DNA of 64,000 bases. Source: Blepharisma stoltei ATCC 30299 (Eukaryota > Protista > Ciliophora). The position numbers were made by a program, and so were the translations under genes. This document shows, piece by piece, positions 1 to 55,595 of the stretch (within the stretch, counting starts at the first letter, position 1; every line of letters starts with the position of its first letter). The notes under the pieces were generated by a model, which made no database searches, was not told the DNA's origin, and saw nothing but the letters and a program-made list of their open reading frames with translations. The stretch lies in NCBI GenBank assembly GCA_965603825.1, contig CBFDEM010000046.1, positions 1-64,000 of the forward strand, given 5' to 3'.

Positions 1-3000
1 ACACCCAACCACCCTAACACCCAACACCCAACACCTCAACCAAACACCCAAACACCCTAACACCCATCACCCTAACACCCACACCCTAACACCCTCACAC
101 CCTAACAACACCCTAACACCCTAACACCCTAACACCCAAACACCCCTAACACCCTAACACCCTAACACCCTAACACCCTAACACCCTAACACCCTAACCC
201 CTAACACCCTAACACCCTAACACCCTAACACCCTAACACCCTAACACCCTAATCACCCTAACACCCTAACACCCTAACACCCTAACACCCTAACACCCTA
301 ACACCCTAACACCCTAACACCCTAACACCCTAACACCCCTAACACCCTAACACCCTAACACCCTAACACCCTAACACCCTAACACCCTAACACCCTAACA
401 CCCTAACACCCTAACACCCTAACACCCTAACACCCTAACACCCTAACACCCTAAACCCTAACACCCTAACACCCTAACACCCTAACACCCCTAACACCCT
501 AACACCCTAACACCCTAACACCCTAACACCCTAACACCCTAACACCCTAACACCCTAACACCCTAACACCCTAACACCCTAACACCCTAACACCCTAACA
601 CCCTAACACCCTACACCCTAACACCCTAACCACCCTAACACCCTAACACCCTAACACCCTAACACCCTAACACCCTAACACCCTAACACCCTAACACCCT
701 AACCAACACCCTAACACCCTAACACCCTAACACCCTAACACCCTAACACCCTAACACCCTAACACCCTAACACCACCCTAACACCCTAACACCCTAACAC
801 CCTAACACCCTAACACCCTAACACCCTAACACCCTAACACCCTAACACCCTAACACCCTAACACCCTAACACCCTAACACCCTAACACCCTAACACCCTA
901 ACACCCTAACACCCTAACACCCTAACACCCTAACACCCTACACCTAACACCCTAACACCCTAACACCCTAACACCCTAACACCCTAACACCCTAACACCC
1001 TAACACCCTAACACCCTAACACCCTAACACCCTAACACCCTAACACCCACCCTAACACCCTAACACCCTAACACCCTAACACCCTAACACCCTAACACCC
1101 CTAACACCCTAACACCCTAACACCCTAACACCCTAACACCCTAACACCCTAACACCCTAACACCCTAACACCCTAACACCCTAACACCCTAACACCCTAA
1201 CACCCTAACACCCTAACACCCTAACACCCTAACACCCTAACACCCTAACACCCTAACACCCTAACACCCTAACACCTAACACCCTAACACCCTAACACCT
1301 AACACCCTAACACCCTAACACCCTAACACCCTAACACCCTAACACCCTAACACCCTAACACCCTAACACCCTAACACCCTAACACCCTAACACCCTAACA
1401 CCCTAACACCCTAACACCCTAACACCCTAACACCCTAACACCCTAACACCCTAACACCCTAACACCCTAACACCCTAACACCCACACCCTAACACCCTAA
1501 CACCCTAACACCCTAACACCCTAACACCCTAACACCCTAACACCCTAACACCCTAACACCCTAACACCCTAACACCCTAACACCCTAACACCCTAACACC
1601 CTAACACCCTAACACCCTAACACCCTAACACCCTAACACCCTAACACCCTAACACCCTAACACCCTAACACCCTAACACCCTAACACCCTAACACCCTAA
1701 CACCCTAACACCCTAACACCCTAACACCCTAACACCCTAACACCCTAACACCCTAACACCCTAACACCCCTAACACCCTAACACCCCTAACACCCTAACA
1801 CCCTAACACCCTAACACCCTAACACCCTAACACCCTAACACCCTAACACCCTAACACCCTAACACCCTAACACCCTAACACCCTAACACCCTAACACCCT
1901 AACACCCTAACACCCTAACACCCTAACACCCTAACACCCTAACACCCTAACACCCTAACACCCTAACACCCTAACACCCTAACACCCTAACACCCTAACA
2001 CCCTAACACCCTAACACCCTAACACCCTAACACCCTAACACCCTAACACCCTAACACCCTAACACCCTAACACCCTAACACCCTAACACCCTAACACCCT
2101 AACACCCTAACACCCTAACACCCTAACACCCTAACACCCTAACACCCTAACACCCTAACACCCTAACACCCTAACACCTAACACCCTAACACCCTAACAC
2201 CCTAACACCCTAACACCCTAACACCCTAACACCCTAACACCCTAACACCCTAACACCCTAACACCCTAACACCCTAACACCCTAACACCCTAACACCCTA
2301 ACACCCTAACACCCTAACACCCTAACACCCTAACACCTAACACCCTAACACCCTAACACCACCCTAACACCCTAACACCCTAACACCCTAACACCCTAAC
2401 ACCCTAACACCCTAACACCCTAACACCCTAACACCCTAACACCCTAACACCCTAACACCCTAACACCCTAACACCCTAACACCCTAACACCCTAACACCC
2501 TAACACCCTAACACCCTAACACCCTAACACCCTAACACCCTAACACCCTAACACCCTAACACCCTAACACCCTAACACCCTAACACCCCTAACACCCTAA
2601 CACCCTAACACCCTAACACCCTAACACCCTAACACCCTAACACCCTAACACCCTAACACCCTAACACCCTAACACCCTAACACCCTAACACCCCTAACAC
2701 CCTAACACCCTAACACCCTAACACCCTAACACCCTAACACCCTAACACCCTAACACCCTAACCCCTAACACCCTAACACCCTAACACCCTAACACCCTAA
2801 CACCCTAACACCCTAACACCCTAACACCCTAACACCCTACCCCTAACACCCTAACACCCTAACACCCTAACACCCTAACACCCTAACACCCTAACACCCT
2901 AACACCCTAACACCCTAACACCCTAACACCCCTAACACCCTAACACCCTAACACCCTAACACCCTAACACCCTAACACCCTAACACCCTAACACCCTAAC

Positions 3001-3702
3001 ACCCTAACACCCTAACACCCTAACACCCTAACACCCTAACACCCTAACACCCTAACACCCTAACACCCTAACACCCTAACACCCTAACACCCTAACACCC
3101 TAACACCCTAACACCCTAACACCCTAACACCCTAACACCCTAACACCCTAACACCCTAACACCCTAACACCCTAACACCCTAACACCCTAACACCCTAAC
3201 ACCCTAACACCCTAACACCCTAACACCCTAACACCCTAACACCCTAACACCCTAACACCCTAACACCCTAACACCCTAACACCCTAACACCTAACACCCT
3301 AACACCCTAACACCCTAACACCCTAACACCCTAACACCCTAACACCCTAACACCCTAACACCCCTAACACCCTAACACCCTAACACCCTAACACCCTAAC
3401 ACCCTAACACCCTAACACCCTAACACCCTAACACCCTAACACCCTAACACCCTAACACCCTAACACCCTAACACCCTAACACCCTAACACCCTAACACCC
3501 TAACACCCTAACACCCTAACACCCTAACACCCTAACACCTAACCTAACACCCTAACACCCTAACACCCTAACACCCTAACACCCTAACACCCTAACACCC
3601 TAACACCCTAACACCCTAACACCCTAACACCCTAACACCCTAACACCCTAACCCTAACACCCTAACACCCTAACACCCTAACACCCTAACACCCTAACAC
3701 CC
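1..3702 (+). repeat. Telomeric repeat array (CCCTAACA)n, about 460 units, chromosome end
   Basis: Direct: an uninterrupted 8-mer tandem array with scattered indel variants, most degenerate in the first ~150 nt. CCCTAACA is the heterotrich (Stentor/Blepharisma) telomere unit. Confidence 0.99.
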
Positions 3703-29198: not shown

Positions 29199-30078
29199 GA
29201 TAACAAATATTCATTTTTATATGTTCAAGTTAATTTAAATTCTATTTAAAATAATTAGTTTTTAGATATCGTAACAGGTAATATCAATTGCAAAAGTTAT
29301 TAAATAGGCTTTATACAAAGCAAATGGTCAGATGTATCTGTTACCATATTTATAGTTCAAGCCAGAATTTTAACTTATTAAATCAGTATGAGATTCATAT
29401 TCATAAAACGGCATCAATATACTAATGGAATGTGCTCAAAAATTAATAATAAAACAAAGAATAATAAAAATTATATAATTTAAGATGAATATTCTTAATT
29501 AAAAGATACAAATACAGATAAAAGCTAATGCATTATGTAATTTTAATATAAGTTGAATTATAGTTTTCAGAATCTGTTATATGGCAAAACAGTTCTTTGT
29601 AATAGATATAAATATTATTACTCTCAAGACGAGATTGAAATTTGCATAGGTTATTACCTTGTGAATAATTATTACTACTAGTCTTTTAGCACTGTGAACC
29701 TGCATTCAGCTCTTTCGTAAAATGCTGTATGTGAATAGCCAGTTAATTTTTAAGGACCTATCAATCTCAATTTAATGCTAAGCTCAGCACTATTAATTTT
29801 AGCACAGCTTTCCTATTGTTTTGTAATACTTATTTTGATAGAAAAGGAAACGGAATTATTTAAAAATGCAGGCTTAAATTCGAAATTTAAAAGAATAAGC
29901 GAAGATTTATAATAGCCTGAAAAAGTCTTTCTTAAAAGAAATATCGAAAACACCCGTTTTAAGAAAAATTAATAAAATAAAAACTAAAATCCTTTTAAAC
30001 TTTAAAGCATAAAATTGATGCATAAATCTAAAAGGAAGAGAGTTATTATATGGTTTTCCAATAATATATTTTTTAACT

Positions 30079-32717
30079 ATGGAGACCAAGAATTGCTTTA
30101 AGCAGAGCTGTAAGCATGAAGCTGAATATGTATGCAAATCCAATACTCCTGAATCTTATTTATGCAAAAGACACTTCGAGGAGTATGCTTCGAGCAATAG
30201 AGATCATAATTTTGAGCCCCTTTACTTACAGCCAGCTGAAGGGACAAGAGAGGCAATCATTAATATTCTTGAGAAAACAAAGCACAAGCAAGAAAGTTAA
30301 AGAAAAAGTATATAGATTCCTTCAGTAATTCAAAAAAAAATTTAAAAGATATCTTGGAAGCATTGGATTGCGATTCATTAAAAATAAGCAACTGCATCGA
30401 GCTGATTTCTCAGGCTCGAAAAATATCAAAATTGGAGAAAGACCCAATTTTAAAGCTGCTGACCTTACGCCCTGAAAAAGCTATTAGAAAAGCGAAAAAG
30501 ATATTTTCAGCTGAATCAGAGCCATTTAGCAGCATAAAATTATTTGCTGGAATGAGCAAAGAAATTGAGAAAATTATTGAAAGCTTCATCCAAGACAAAA
30601 TCGAAACTTTTCTAGACCAAAGACTCCTAAAAATAGAAAAAAGTTTAGAAGAGCATGATAAAATTATCAATTTGGAGAATGATCGGTTTGAAAAGGTAAA
30701 AGATTCTTTGTCAAGCCTGAAAAAGGAGCATAAAAAGAGTATAAGAAAATTGAAAACTGGAGACAAGAGACAGAACTTAAAACGGAAAACGAAATGAGTT
30801 CATTTATGACTCAATTTCGTAGTATTACTGAAGATCTTGATAAAAAAATATCGAGTATCAAATTATCAATGCAAGCCACCAATAATATTACTCCAAATAT
30901 AGAAAATAGCTTATTAAATACTCAAGAAATAATGGATAAAAACAAAATTTATTCGATAAAGGAAATACCATTGAAGTAGAGCAAGATTTCAGAAGAATTT
31001 GCTCAATATATGAAAACCGCCCTTCAGATCCCTCACTAGTTCAAGCTTATCAAGATTATAGCACTGCTCATGCGAGATTGACTTATCTTTATTATTACGG
31101 CTCTTCTACAGAAGAAGAGCCTTTTAGCAGCGATACTGCTTTATACATTTATGATACTGAAAACGAAAGAGAATTTAAGACAGAATTACTTCTTCACTCA
31201 TGAGAGAGCAAAATGTTTTCTAGTCACAAAAGACTTATTTTTTCAAATATTAAAAAATGTTTTAAATTTGATAGTATAGATGCGATTTAACTATAAAATT
31301 AACGTTTATAAAACTCAATCTTCAAAATTATAAATTAGCAAGAGATTTAAAGAGATTAGTTTGAATTTTTTTTAATATATTAATTCGTTCACGGATGGTC
31401 AAGCTTAAAATACCACACCCTTGACTACAGCCCTACCTCATCTGCATTCTGCCTATCATTGGATGTATTAAATATTAAATATCTGTTGCTTATATGTAAA
31501 TTTAAGGTCGAACCATGATTTGCAGTAGATTTATTATATGTCTTATACTTATAAGTATCGCTTTAATAGCTTATATATCTCTAGTACATTTTAATTGGCT
31601 TGCTTAATGTAAGAAGATAAGATATTTTTAGTTCAATCAAAAAATCAGTTTAATAATCCCAAAAGGAACTTTACGTAATAATAGATTAGCAAATAGCATA
31701 AATGGCTGTATGAGAGATGAGAAATGAGAAATGAGGATGAGAGAGATAGGACACGACTTCGTTTAAAAATTGCATATTTAATTAATAATAATTTCTGCCT
31801 TTGATAATATTTTTACTAATTACTGCTATACGATCTATACTTATTAATTTTCTAAATTTTTTTTATTAATATATAAATGGCGTTATGCGTTTATTAATCA
31901 ACTTATTTTTATTATAAATTTCTAATTGCATGACAAATTATGTAATAAATACAATAATTTAATTCATTAGTTCTATATTAATATTAATTACCTAAGTTCA
32001 ATGACTAAATACATATATGTGGGTGGGGTGGATTTTATGTTTGACGAAACGGAGAACGAAGAAGTTAAGAACACCCCTGTCAAGTGATATCTGCATAGTT
32101 CCGATTCCAAATTGTGGGTTATTTTGTTATGACAATTCAAAATCCTCCCCTGTTTCATTTCTAATTCTTGGCGATTGAACGGTTCGTAGACTGCCACAAG
32201 GAACTTCTTCTAATTATTCATCAGCTGTCTTTTTAATTGGAGTGTTTATTGCTTTGGAGGAAAAATTAAAGATAATCCCATAGCTGTATCAGAAAGGTAT
32301 GATATGGAAAAAAATATATGGGCTGAATTAAAGCCTATGCCATGGTCTGATGATTCCTGCCATGCTGTGATGTATAATGGAGGTATTTTTATTTCTGGAT
32401 ATGAGAAACAAAATCTTTTGCGATACTCAATTGATACCGAAACTTTAAGGGTAATTCCTTTCCAATTTGGGGAAAAGAAAAGAAAGATCTTGATAAATTT
32501 AGATAGGTTGTACGTAATTGAAAGTTTTAATGGATTTATCTACGAAAGCCAAATTGGAGATGAGTTTATGTGGAAAAAGATAGGTAGATCGATACTCGGG
32601 CGCTTTTGCAGACAAGTTTATTGATCGTATAACAAAGGTGCGATATACATAAAAACATCTTCAAAGGCGAACTATAGATTTATATTGAATCAAAACACTA
32701 TGTCTCAGCTTTTGTAG
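30079..32717 (+). pseudogene. Cys/His-motif + coiled-coil + Kelch-repeat gene, frameshifted and split by an 876-bp insertion
   Basis: N-terminal CFKQSC..YVC..LCKRH, a coiled coil, then Kelch blades (SVYCFGG..SERYDMEKNIWAELKPMP; IFISG). Frameshifts near 30295, 30765, 30950 and 32233. TAG at 32715-32717 after TGA readthrough. Confidence 0.8.
31189..32064. mobile_element. IES/MITE-like insertion: TTA direct repeats (31186-31188, 32065-32067) enclosing terminal inverted repeats CTTCTTC...GAAGAAG
   Basis: AT-rich non-coding block. Excision leaving one TTA gives continuous EFKTEL|RTPLSSDICIVPIPN in the host gene. Confidence 0.75.
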
Positions 32718-34007
32718 GAAAAATAGAAAGTAGATATAATAATATTTCTTAGAATAATTAGGTTACATTTATAATGCTTATTTATTTTATTTTTCATCAG
32801 ACGAATATATAAAAATACTGATTTGGATTATTAATAAGTCCATTTTGATTTAAACTTTGAGATTCATAGGGTATCTAATTTTATTTGGTATAAAGTGAAT
32901 TTATTAGCCAAGTGATTAAATTGCCTAGATCCTGGAGAGCATGGTTTCCTTAATTGTAAAACAAGCAGCACTTAAAAATATTATTGAAGAAAATAATGAA
33001 TTAATTATATGTCAAAATAGCCATACAAATCATCCTCCAGGTGAGCGATTCAAGTGTGGCCTTAGAATGAAGAAGGGCTTAAATGAGGCTTAATTCATTG
33101 CGATATTAGAATAAAAAAATATAAAAGAGAATGATATAATTTACTCAGACACGTTCTATCAAGAAACCATTAGTAACTTTTCATTAATAACAAAAAGGAA
33201 AATATCAATTAAATTTTTTGAAGTTTTAATTAAAAGCAGTTCTATTTATCACAACTGCACAAACAGCAACTTATAAAGTTAATCTGGGAAGATTATTTAC
33301 TCCCCTCATTCTTGATCAAAAATCAATTTAATCAATAGTAGATTAAAAATTCTGGAAAATTAATTATTATTTACTGCTAAATTTATATTAAAATTGTTTC
33401 TAATAAAATAATCATTCGCTAGTAACAAGATAACATGCACCATATTATAAATTGCTTATAATTGCATAAATGATTTTAAACTAATATCTACAAGATTCAT
33501 TATTATTAAATATATGCAGTTTGATTTGAGCGCATGCAGAAGAGTTTAAAATATGAAATTCATTTCAATAAAGCATGAAGAGCAGGACTATATCATTTTT
33601 AAGGTTTTCATATAGCCATTTTGTAAACTATTTTATAGAAACAACTTTGTTTTGAAATATGGCTAGTGATTTTATTTAAGGTTAATACTTAAAATATCTA
33701 ATGATGTATTAAGAAAATTAGAAATCATTGTTTTGTGGCCAAATAGCTATATAGTGTCTGCATTCGCTGCCTCCCTTGCTATAAAGACTGCTCAAGATGG
33801 TGACATCAATAGATTAATGGCTTTAGTGGATAATGATTAAGATCTTAATATTAGCAGTATCTCTCAATTAAAGGTAAAATCTAAATAAGTAAGGGAAAAA
33901 TCTATAAATAAGTGCTTATTCTGCAAGCAAGGCATTTTTAAAGTAACCGAATCCATTTAAAGATATCTATTTTCCATTTCTGTAGAATTATATAAATTTA
34001 TTAGGAG

Positions 34008-34946: not shown

Positions 34947-36130
34947 TCTATAATTTCCCATAAGCTTTAAGCTAAATAATTAAAAATGGCTTTTATTTAT
35001 TAATTCTTTATTTTTTATAAAATTTTATAGAATCTTAATTTTAAAATTATTTAATTGAACAAAACATGATAATTAATTATTAAAAGGAGTTTCTGTGCAA
35101 TGTTTTACTGTAATAATGACTATTAATACTCTATGATTTTTGGATCAGCACAAAGCTGGATAAATATTTAGATTGCTAAAACGTAGAAATAAGTTTTTGA
35201 GGTTGCTATATTGACAAACGATTGAAATAATTTAAAATAATTCCTTTCTTTGCTGGCATTAAAGATACAATGGCAGCGAGTTGCATTTAAATTACTTGAT
35301 TGGTCGTTAATGCAAGAAATTTTTAAATTTTTTTGAAAAATGCTAAGTTAGGCATCATTTGCTCTAGAGATAACCAACAGAGTTGATTTTTTTGATTACT
35401 TATCATAAAGGAGATGAGCAAGTCATACTTGTTTTAAACCTGAACCAGAAAATCCAGAAAACTTTTCATAAAATATAAGCAGAATTATGAGGCTTAAACA
35501 CAACTAATGAACTAAAGCCATATGAAATCAACTGGAGAATATTCCTCACAGTCTGAATTATCTTTCGCAAACTCGGAAACCAAAATTTCAGAAATATATT
35601 GATATTATATTTTATAGAAACACAAACAATGATTTGAAAAAAAGGAAATAAAGAAGCTAAAAGTAGTGAGGATGATTTTACAAGCGCCAATGCTAGAGCT
35701 AAGATGATTAAGCCTAAGAATTTCATAAGGAGAAAACAAATTGAGGATATTTGGTCCATAAGAAACTGGCAGAAATAATTAAAAGGAAGTTCCTCTTTGA
35801 TAAGAGATATCTTGATGAGTCTAAGAATGAAAAAGAGATGATAAAAATAGTTTGACAGAAGATTATCACTTCCAGAGTTGCTGTTGAAAGAACCAAAACT
35901 ACTAGAATCTCCAAAAGCTGAAAATTGATGGCTCAATGATGGTAAAGCCAACACTCTCACGATAAATTCCGAAAGAAAAATAGCTATAAAAGCAAATTAA
36001 AGTTTTCATTCATGAAATCCAATATTCTTACATAAATTTCTTAAAGTAATATGCCAAAATCAGACTAAAATTTTGTATTTTCCATCTCTTTTATTTGGTA
36101 AATTTATACAAAAACTCTTCAATTTAAAAT

Positions 36131-52406: not shown

Positions 52407-53537
52407 ATGGGATATCTGACTGAGGAATCAATAAATACCTTAAAGAACCATAAGTATAAGGGAAGTCCAACCACTCCACTGATGAAGCTTTTAGATAAAA
52501 TACTGTGGAGTCCCCTTTCTAAGTTTATTCCAAATTCCATAGCTCCGAACATGATCACACTTCTCTCGACCATTTCCATTATGCTCGGTGCCATTCTCTC
52601 CCTATTCTATAACGATATGCAATTTGGGAAGAACTCTCCTCTTTGGGTATGGCCAGTTGCTGGTCTATGCCTATGGCTGTATGACACCCTCGATAATTTA
52701 GATGGATTACATGCTAGAAGGACAGGACAAGGGTCTCCATTAGGGCAGCTAATGGACCATGGTAACTATTATATAGGACTTGATAGCAGCTTCAATACTT
52801 TTGCAGTATCATTCTTGATTTTCCAATGTGTAGGCCTGCATGGTACAAGTGTATGGATTCCTGTGATAAATATTTCAGTTCAGTCCATCTTTTTCTACGC
52901 AGCCTGGGAAGAAAACTACGTAGGCTCTTTAAGAATAAACCTTGGGTCTGTTGGAGTTGACGAATTCGCGTATATTCATATTTTGCTGTTTGTTATTACC
53001 TATTTTGTGGGCTATGACTTCTTTGAGACTGAATTATTCTCTGGATTCCCTATAAAAAATTTTTGCGGACTATACATTTGCTTTATGTATTTTTTATTTA
53101 GATTTCTCTACAGTGCTATCTGCTACACCGCTAAAACCCTGAAATTTACCAAGTCTTTAGCTCCATTACTTAAATGGATCCCTATGTTCCAAGTTTATAT
53201 TGGGACCGCTTTGATTTACCAGACTGTGGCTTATAGTAAATATACATTATTATTTATTATTGACCAGTCTACACTATTTGGAGTTCTCAGCGTATGGATG
53301 ATCATTTGCAATGTGTCCAAAGTGAATTTTAGCTCATTCCGTATCGATACTTCGCTATATCTGCTGTATGCTATTTTAGTATACTCCGGGATTGATTTCT
53401 TTAACCAATTTGAGGTCCATTTAGTAGTTACATTTGCTTTCGTTATTTATATCTGCTATTTCTTTTCTTCATTGGTTTTAGAAATTGCGAATTATTTAGA
53501 TATTCCAGTTTTCACAGTTAAACAGAAAAAATCTTAA
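52407..53537 (+). CDS. Choline/ethanolamine phosphotransferase (CDP-alcohol phosphotransferase), paralogue 1; 2 predicted introns
   Basis: APNMIT and [26 protein letters not shown]; the motif is restored by removing 52762-52776. Multiple TM helices. Confidence 0.92.
   Translation: [376 protein letters not shown]
52762..52776 (+). other. 15-nt stop-free intron GTAACTATTATATAG
   Basis: Matches consensus; removal restores DHGLD spacing. Confidence 0.9.
53087..53101 (+). other. 15-nt stop-free intron GTATTTTTTATTTAG
   Basis: Matches consensus; same position as in the paralogue. Confidence 0.75.
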
Positions 53538-54464: not shown

Positions 54465-55595
54465 ATGGGATATCTGACTGAAGAATCAATTAACACCTTA
54501 AAGAACCACAAGTACAGAGGAAGTCCAACCACTCCGCTGATGAAGCTTTTAGACAAAATACTATGGACTCCGCTCTCTAAATTTATTCCAAATTCCATAG
54601 CTCCAAACATGGTTACTCTTTTTTCAACAATTTTTATTATGATTGGCGTCATCCTCACGCTGGTCTATAATGACCTGCAATTTGGGAAAAATCCTCCCCT
54701 CTGGGTATGGCCAGTCGCTGGATTGTGCTTATGGCTATATGATACTCTTGATAACTTAGATGGCAAGCATGCAAGAAAAACTGGGCAAAGTTCACCATTA
54801 GGGCAACTAATGGACCATGGTAACTATTATATAGGACTTGATAGCAGCTTTAACACCTTTGCAGTGTCCTTCCTAAATTTCCAATCAGTAGGGCTGCATG
54901 GCACAAGTATATGGATTCCTTTGATAAATATTTCAGTCCAGTCCATATTTTTTTACGCAGCATGGGAAGAAAATTACGTAGGCTCAGTAAGGACAACCCT
55001 TGGATGGCTTGGGGTTGAGGAATTCGCTTACATCCACGCTATACAGTTTGTTTTCACTTTCTTTGTGGGCTATGAATTCTATAATACTGAACTAGTAGCC
55101 GGATTTGCTATTAAGGATGCTTATGGATTATATCTTTGCTTCATGTATTTTATATTTAGATTTATTTATATCGTATCCAGGTATATTAATAAGACATTAA
55201 GATTTGCCAAATCTTATGCTCCATTGCTAAAATGGATTCCTATGATCCAAGTTTATATTGGGACCGCTTTGATTTATCAGACAAGTGTCTATAGTAAGTA
55301 TGCCTTACTATTTATGATAGACCAGTCTGTGCTCTTTGGGGCTCTCAGTGTGTGGATGATCATTTGCAATGTGTCTAAGGTGAGCTTTAGTCCATTACGT
55401 ATAGATACTTCTCTCTATCTATTGTATGCTATTTTAGTATATTCTGGGATTGATCTCTTTAACCAATTTGAGATCCATTTAGCAGTCACATCTGCGTACG
55501 TAATTTACATGTGCTATTTCTTTTCTGCGTTAGCTTTAGAAATTGCCAATTATTTAGACATCCCAATATTCACAGTCAAAAAGAAAGTAACTTAA
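54465..55595 (+). CDS. Choline/ethanolamine phosphotransferase, paralogue 2; 2 predicted introns
   Basis: Colinear tandem duplicate; [26 protein letters not shown]. Confidence 0.92.
   Translation: [376 protein letters not shown]
54820..54834 (+). other. 15-nt stop-free intron GTAACTATTATATAG
   Basis: Identical to 52762-52776. Confidence 0.9.
55145..55159 (+). other. 15-nt stop-free intron GTATTTTATATTTAG
   Basis: Matches consensus; homologous to 53087-53101. Confidence 0.75.

Follow-up and report, generated by a model that had tools for sequence, protein, structure and literature searches.

Within its first 64 kb (positions 1 to 64,000, hereafter the window), contig 46 of the ciliate Blepharisma stoltei ATCC 30299 (GCA_965603825.1, CBFDEM010000046.1) contains a Kelch-family pseudogene that is interrupted by an AT-rich block of 876 bp (31189-32064), in which we very probably see the decayed remains of a BogoMITE, a miniature inverted-repeat transposable element (MITE). 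The assembly, of 41.46 Mb in 64 contigs, represents the somatic, macronuclear (MAC) genome, and its genes remain open only when TGA is read as tryptophan. This genome has been described as 64 telomere-to-telomere contigs in a HiFi-based assembly, with UGA coding for tryptophan, telomeres of CCCTAACA repeats and introns that are mostly 15-16 bp long (PMC9942806). The window starts with the telomere tract (1-3699), composed of 433 CCCTAACA units over 3.7 kb with occasional variant units, and the locus of the block is found about 27 kb from this contig end.

The host gene lies on the forward strand, in two parts. Using tblastn, the 5' part (30079-31188) is collinear in three frames with residues 4-363 of an intact paralogue of 596 aa (L004), and it comprises a Cys/His-rich N-terminus (30079-30294), a coiled coil (30294-30940) and a linker (30949-31188). 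The 3' part (32068-32717) is collinear with residues 373-569 of the paralogue, comprising linker and first blade (32068-32235) and Kelch repeats up to the stop codon. The Kelch_1 domain (PF01344) was recovered in the C-terminal piece with 23 bits against a cut-off of 20.1, the two halves having been searched separately. The locus is also collinear with a paralogue of 600 aa. However, the 596-aa paralogue can be followed along 30079-32660 only through four frame changes besides the block: three in the 5' part (at about 30294, 30740 and 30945), each within an A-rich run, and a one-base frameshift in the 3' part (at about 32232), within a T5 run. No tiny intron fits to account for any of these four frameshifts, each of which falls in an A5 or T5 run. 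They are probably real, since open reading frames (ORFs) of about 600-890 aa are preserved in several paralogues of this HiFi-based assembly. The four homopolymer frameshifts therefore make the host a pseudogene of a family combining a Cys/His-rich region, a coiled coil and Kelch repeats. The public annotation presents it as four fragments of 73, 116, 69 and 137 aa, the first three located 5' of the block.

The two parts meet precisely. The sequence ...YDTENEREFKTEL ends at 31188 and RTPLSSDICIVPIPNCGLFCY begins at 32068 in the identical frame, with TGA as tryptophan, and removing the block together with one TTA keeps both the reading frame and the register of the paralogues, so that the in-frame fusion proposed in a preliminary description of this DNA holds. 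That description had also set beforehand, as a test, that Kelch paralogues should be contiguous at the TEL|RTP position. When the upstream and downstream pieces were used as queries, the two flank matches were only 15-33 nt apart in 14 paralogues, and 15 paralogues cross the site in a single ORF. Judged by these paralogues, the host was once contiguous exactly at TEL|RTP, and the alignments show the block as an insertion into a formerly contiguous Kelch-family gene. The earlier idea of a gene split by an element is thus sustained for the once-contiguous gene, but the block is not the only lesion, given the four further frameshifts and the four annotated fragments.

The boundaries of the block are well defined. 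Its GC content is 0.256 (0.23-0.28 by another measure) and it is flanked by TTA direct repeats, the left one (31186-31188) being a putative target-site duplication and the leucine codon of ...KTEL, and the right one occupying 32065-32067. Directly inside these repeats, CTTCTTC (31189-31195) and GAAGAAG (32058-32064) form perfect inverted termini of 7 nt. The length, the AT-richness, the TTA repeats and the inverted ends were all found as previously described. Six pairs of in-frame 3-nt direct repeats can be drawn around the break in homology, and of these the TTA pair alone shows inverted termini of any length. Inside a 3-nt direct repeat, inverted termini that agree perfectly over 7 nt occur across the window at a rate of 1.4e-4 per pair, which gives about 1e-3 at the locus; this terminal pattern is more than chance.

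We compared the window with the MAC+IES assembly GCA_914767885.1, which includes internal eliminated sequences (IESs) and contains the same contig, which runs collinearly with the window apart from segments that are inserted into it. These segments correspond to 32 true IESs between 4.2 and 39.3 kb of the window, including two canonical BogoMITEs (388 and 385 bp, with a mutual identity of 97%) and five diverged copies. The block is not among the 32 IESs: it lies within an uninterrupted 3.9-kb MAC segment of that assembly, where the sole apparent difference is at an IES junction, and both public assemblies carry it. Among the features that define an IES, the block presents a TA-containing direct repeat of which one copy would be left after removal, but it is not absent from MAC DNA. 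By the published operational definition it is therefore MAC sequence and not an IES; the preliminary description had proposed a retained IES/MITE-like element, no longer or only partly excised. Its presence in the MAC reference suggests that the block is mostly or wholly kept in somatic DNA.

BogoMITEs are non-autonomous derivatives of the pogo-family transposon Bogo, and Bogo-type elements insert by a cut-and-paste mechanism, duplicating a TAA/TTA target. In B. stoltei, the BogoMITE (rnd-1_family-0) was described among the "MITIES" by Seah et al. 2023 (PMC9942856), and the published terminal inverted repeat (TIR) of Bogo consists of CTC, a poly-C run and TCCGTGAGCGAACAAAA, about 30 nt in total, next to a TAA/TTA target duplication (PMC9942856). 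The TIR and the duplication given in the preliminary description agree with this source. The left terminus of the block (31189-31213, forward strand) can be read as a decayed version of this TIR, with CTTCTTC in place of the poly-C run followed by TCATGAGAGAGCAAAA; within it, TGAGAGAGCAAAA (31201-31213) agrees with the Bogo TIR of the literature in 11 of 13 positions, as previously noted. To obtain a background, the 30-nt TIR was aligned beside every TTA/TAA of the window outside the telomere and the block locus (n = 7131 40-mers). The left end has an anchored score of 4 against a background of -10.4 +/- 4.3, a value reached by 2 of the 7131 sites. The TCATGAG variant present at this end is also found in true BogoMITE IESs 10 kb away, and nhmmer aligned the end with the inner TIR motif of BogoMITE.

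This likeness continues inwards over 216 bp (31189-31404, forward strand), a segment that would be derived from a BogoMITE after heavy decay and internal deletion, and directly after which a third TTA occurs (31405-31407). Its semi-global alignment with a canonical BogoMITE of 388 bp (L085:20700-21087) scores 41.75, against 28.5 in the reverse orientation and 21.8 +/- 5.1 for GC-matched controls, none of which (0 of 1500) reached the observed score, although the resulting p-value is optimistic because the limits of the 216 bp were set after the motifs had been seen. Using nhmmer profiles of true BogoMITE copies from the same contig, first three and later seven of them, a region of internal homology to profile positions 147-224 was detected at 31283-31348 (from 31249 in one of the profile searches), forward strand. 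It is the top nhmmer match of the 64-kb window (E = 0.19 for the window, 0.0027 for the block alone), and it lies collinearly between the two TIR-like motifs with an orientation that agrees with theirs. The second of these motifs (31379-31404, minus strand) resembles an inverted TIR core, corresponding to the inner-right motif of BogoMITE plus GGTCAA: outside the telomere, the window's best ungapped alignment with the TIR core falls on the minus strand of 31379-31398 (15 of 20 positions), and the score of this internal motif is reached by 15 of the 7131 background sites. Inside it, TCCGTGAACGAA (31384-31395) is identical over all 12 positions to the GAACGAA variant of the neighbouring true BogoMITEs. 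This 12-mer has 38 matches with at most one mismatch in 41.5 Mb, that is, about 8e-4 per 876 bp, uncorrected for the choice of the 12-mer. The TIR core is not enriched in the MAC genome, with 28 matches versus 20 for a control and 38 versus 68 for a reversed control. Taken together, motif order, orientation and alignment make it very probable that the block contains a decayed BogoMITE.

The right side of the block is less informative. The terminus (32033-32064, minus strand) reads CTTCTTC, GTT and then CTCCGT at an offset consistent with a TIR, followed by a poor match; CTTCTTCGTTCTCCGT is indeed found on the minus strand, as the preliminary description had reported. The anchored TIR score of this end is 1, reached by 15 of the 7131 background sites, and CTCCGT is the only intact element. 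The right terminus is only weakly Bogo-like, the replacement of the poly-C run by CTTCTTC being common to both ends. Between the third TTA and this terminus extends an AT-rich middle of about 625 bp (31408-32032) with no coding content and no RNA family, which may be a nested insertion or filler that has decayed. Rfam and tRNA searches of the block gave no match, nor did a Pfam search of ten ORF pieces taken from it, and a sensitive blastn against the TIR-bearing loci produced AT-rich noise only. At the BLAST level the block is single copy, with no other relative in the MAC genome; the preliminary description had suggested a member of an old Bogo-related or a new MITE/IES family.

Besides the choice of limits for the 216-bp alignment, several of these results weigh against reading the block as a Bogo-type insertion. 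Compared as a whole with BogoMITE, the 876 bp give a local score of 47, equalled by 16.8% of the GC-matched MAC segments (p 0.17), and the alignment of the last 50-80 nt with the BogoMITE tail is not significant. The middle of about 625 bp has no match in the 32 neighbouring IESs, in other relics or in the MAC genome. A BLAST search of the MAC genome with the canonical BogoMITE retrieved two other loci and not the block; the internal homology has an E-value of 0.19 at the window scale, where a second AT-rich match scores nearly equal. In addition, the terminal 7-mers are common local words (23 copies of GAAGAAG and 14 of CTTCTTC in the 64 kb), and the pair is not in the top 25 inverted pairs of a generic repeat finder. 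Therefore, the demonstrably BogoMITE-like portion is restricted to about one quarter of the block: the proposed relation to Bogo is supported by the left end, the inverted core and the internal homology, all within the first 216 bp, and the resemblance of the right end is weak. The odds that the whole 876 bp represent one Bogo-type unit are about even, and this view comes mainly from the 7-nt termini shared by both ends and from the TTA repeats.

With moderate confidence, we favour the explanation that the block arose in the germline as a transposon-type insertion at TTA, that its left quarter is a strongly decayed BogoMITE and that it is now part of the MAC reference, in a host that is dead. 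An element would have been inserted by cut-and-paste in the germline at a TTA of a subtelomeric copy of the Kelch family, duplicating this TTA. The remaining 650 bp or so would, in the simplest view, result from a later nested insertion or replacement within the element, which would end in a second, weakly Bogo-like terminus sharing its outermost 7 nt with the left end; the whole 876 bp may thus have moved or grown as one unit. We infer that the block was once an excised IES whose excision was then lost, either by C-to-T decay of the C-rich ends or by a maternal retention that removed the matching scan RNAs; as an alternative course, the element could have landed in an already dead copy, from which removal was never needed. 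As the host is dead, carrying four extra frameshifts, there would be no selection for the removal of the block. For the "fossil of the transposon-to-IES transition" evoked previously, a better description is that of a relic, from a MITE or an IES, which is now kept in somatic DNA.

The best surviving alternative, though an unlikely one, is that the block is a working IES with high retention, cryptic or partly excised, of which the reference shows the retained form. The supplementary information (SI) of PMC9942856 reports 10,048 candidate cryptic IESs in MAC DNA, whose median retention is 95%, and TTA/TAA as frequent boundary repeats, for which an intrinsic preference of the cut site was proposed. 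The block resembles these cryptic or partly retained IESs in being part of the MAC reference, bounded by TTA repeats and located in a gene. The combination of an intact TTA and perfect 7-nt ends with a decayed interior is the pattern to be anticipated if the ends were under selection or were being recognised, and the right junction reads TTAA. However, the IES-minus form is not seen in either of the two public assemblies, both of which carry the block, and excision would restore nothing in a dead host. Moreover, the length of cryptic IESs peaks at 72 bp (SI of PMC9942856), far below the nearly 900 bp of the block, which, in contrast to them, also has recognisable MITE remains.

It seems more doubtful still that the likeness to Bogo is due to chance, with the block being non-transposon filler captured at the break, or else what is left after paralogous copies rearranged in a fast-changing subtelomere. 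Such an origin would fit the non-significant alignment of the whole block, the lack of matches for most of its length and the local abundance of GAAGAAG and CTTCTTC, and the host family is large, often subtelomeric and arranged in tandem, with many broken copies. Nevertheless, three independent Bogo-like features are found collinear and correctly oriented within 216 bp beside a TTA, and the two flanks join without any shift in frame or in paralogue position. We also considered a duplicated coding stub at the right end, where FDETENEEVKN, in another frame, resembles the family motif YDTENE..EEVK. This candidate was ruled out by a hidden Markov model of 15 paralogues, in which the true copy obtains 18.6 bits and the right-end piece falls outside the top 25 matches of the window.

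Finally, an unusually long spliceosomal intron, for instance the only frame-keeping pair, from GT at 31215 to AG at 32069 (855 nt), is very improbable, because the block itself ends in CT...AG and departs from the GT...AG, predominantly 15-16 bp pattern of B. stoltei introns (PMC9942806), the 855-nt splice would add nine residues without a counterpart in the paralogues, the RNA-seq-guided annotation has four fragments and no such intron, and the gene contains four other frameshifts.

Returning to the favoured insertion of a Bogo-type element, its closest known relatives are the BogoMITEs themselves. The block shares with them the TTA/TAA flank and a location on the same contig, and apparently also a terminus in which a run of pyrimidines precedes TC(C/A)(G)TGAG.GA.CAAAA, an inner inverted TIR-like motif and a collinear internal homology of about 70-100 nt. 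In contrast, BogoMITEs are about 388 bp long (about 308 bp when diverged), while the block measures 876 bp, of which 216 bp can be aligned, and is not of unit length. Its poly-C run has become CTTCTTC and its right TIR can hardly be recognised; its divergence greatly exceeds that among the neighbouring copies, which are 70-97% identical, and it resides in MAC DNA whereas BogoMITEs are germline-limited.

The block does not seem to be the only BogoMITE remnant in the MAC genome. Scanning about 300 kb of other MAC loci with the BogoMITE profile, we detected putative relics on contig 35 at about 413.9-414.1 kb (L045:1321-1519; 61 bits with nhmmer), on contig 2 at about 102.1-102.8 kb, in two pieces about 500 bp apart (L055:1494-1571 and 2085-2191), and at contig 18:379596-379613, contig 36:68378-68453 and contig 53:361453-361554. 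The better-preserved ones score 61, 28 and 24 bits. As in the block, the poly-C of their TIRs has been eroded from C to T into a C/T mixture in somatic DNA, and in the relic on contig 2 about 500 bp of other DNA likewise separate the two pieces. In contrast, they are better preserved (15-61 bits, versus about 5 bits for the block). As judged from these profile matches, MAC-resident BogoMITE remains are rare but, given the clearer relics on contigs 35, 2 and 18, not unique, and the block is among the most decayed. Searches of the MAC genome for DDE_1 and HTH_Tnp_Tc5 had matches at other loci only. Two of the loci with partial HTH_Tnp_Tc5 matches (C22:297129-297266 and C58:752048-752176) share 74-78% identity along more than 2 kb, and may be among the partial Bogo-transposase-like MAC matches mentioned in PMC9942856.

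BogoMITEs have been described as germline-limited elements, tolerated since they are deleted from the somatic nucleus. About 8,000 BogoMITEs are removed as IESs, and the block would be a minor but real exception to this somatic removal. A decayed somatic copy would represent another end-point of the path from invasion to decay, namely fixation in the soma where the host is expendable. Taken alone, the block changes little, as the authors of PMC9942856 already stress that excision is a continuum. A set of retained relics, compared with the thousands of excised copies, could instead show which features of the ends are needed for excision. We tentatively propose, as a possibility that we hold to be rather less probable than its opposite, that the block and the better-preserved relics of contigs 35, 2 and 18 are "somatised" former MITE-IESs, with a preference for dispensable DNA, subtelomeric pseudogenes for example. 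In that case, their shared poly-C erosion may mark a sequence needed by the excision machinery, and the retained and excised BogoMITEs would together serve as a natural map of the mutations that affect how IESs are recognised in this early-branching ciliate.

Concerning the host family, more than 113 copies were retrieved in the genome with the upstream piece as query. The family is enriched near telomeres, and many of its members lie only a few kb from a contig end (C39:4667, C24:4965, C13:5954, C36:5326, C47:3076 and C62:3730, among others). Some members form 3-kb tandem arrays, arrays being observed at C30:118971/121886/124887 and C19:47-57 kb, and many members have short ORFs and are probably dead. 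Elsewhere in the window, two ORFs of 376 aa with near-identical starts are arranged in tandem (52407-53537 and 54465-55595); the second copy is annotated with a different model, since the records do not contain its simple ORF product (54465-55592).

The subtelomeric region surrounding the locus is rich in IESs, with the 32 of them distributed over about 35 kb and several families with C-rich TIRs that differ after the poly-C. An IES of 89 bp is located at 30050/30051 (L084:7658-7746), 28 bp upstream of the host ATG, and another of 65 bp lies downstream at 33968-33973 (L084:11672-11736), with the palindromic motif GCCCGAGGATGGCGC that is common to other IESs. Further downstream, four IESs are concentrated in 700 bp of MAC sequence (35344-36031; L084:13116-15103), three of which are diverged BogoMITEs of 308, 373 and 329 bp. 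At 33297-33321, about 580 bp past the stop codon of the pseudogene, a TTA is followed by CTCCCCTCATTCTTGATCAAAA, which matches at 18 of 22 positions the TIR CTCCCCCCATCCTTGATCGAAC of a different IES family of 545 bp (L085:6667-7211); no second match of this kind occurs in the window, and the sequence appears to represent a solo TIR relic within MAC DNA.

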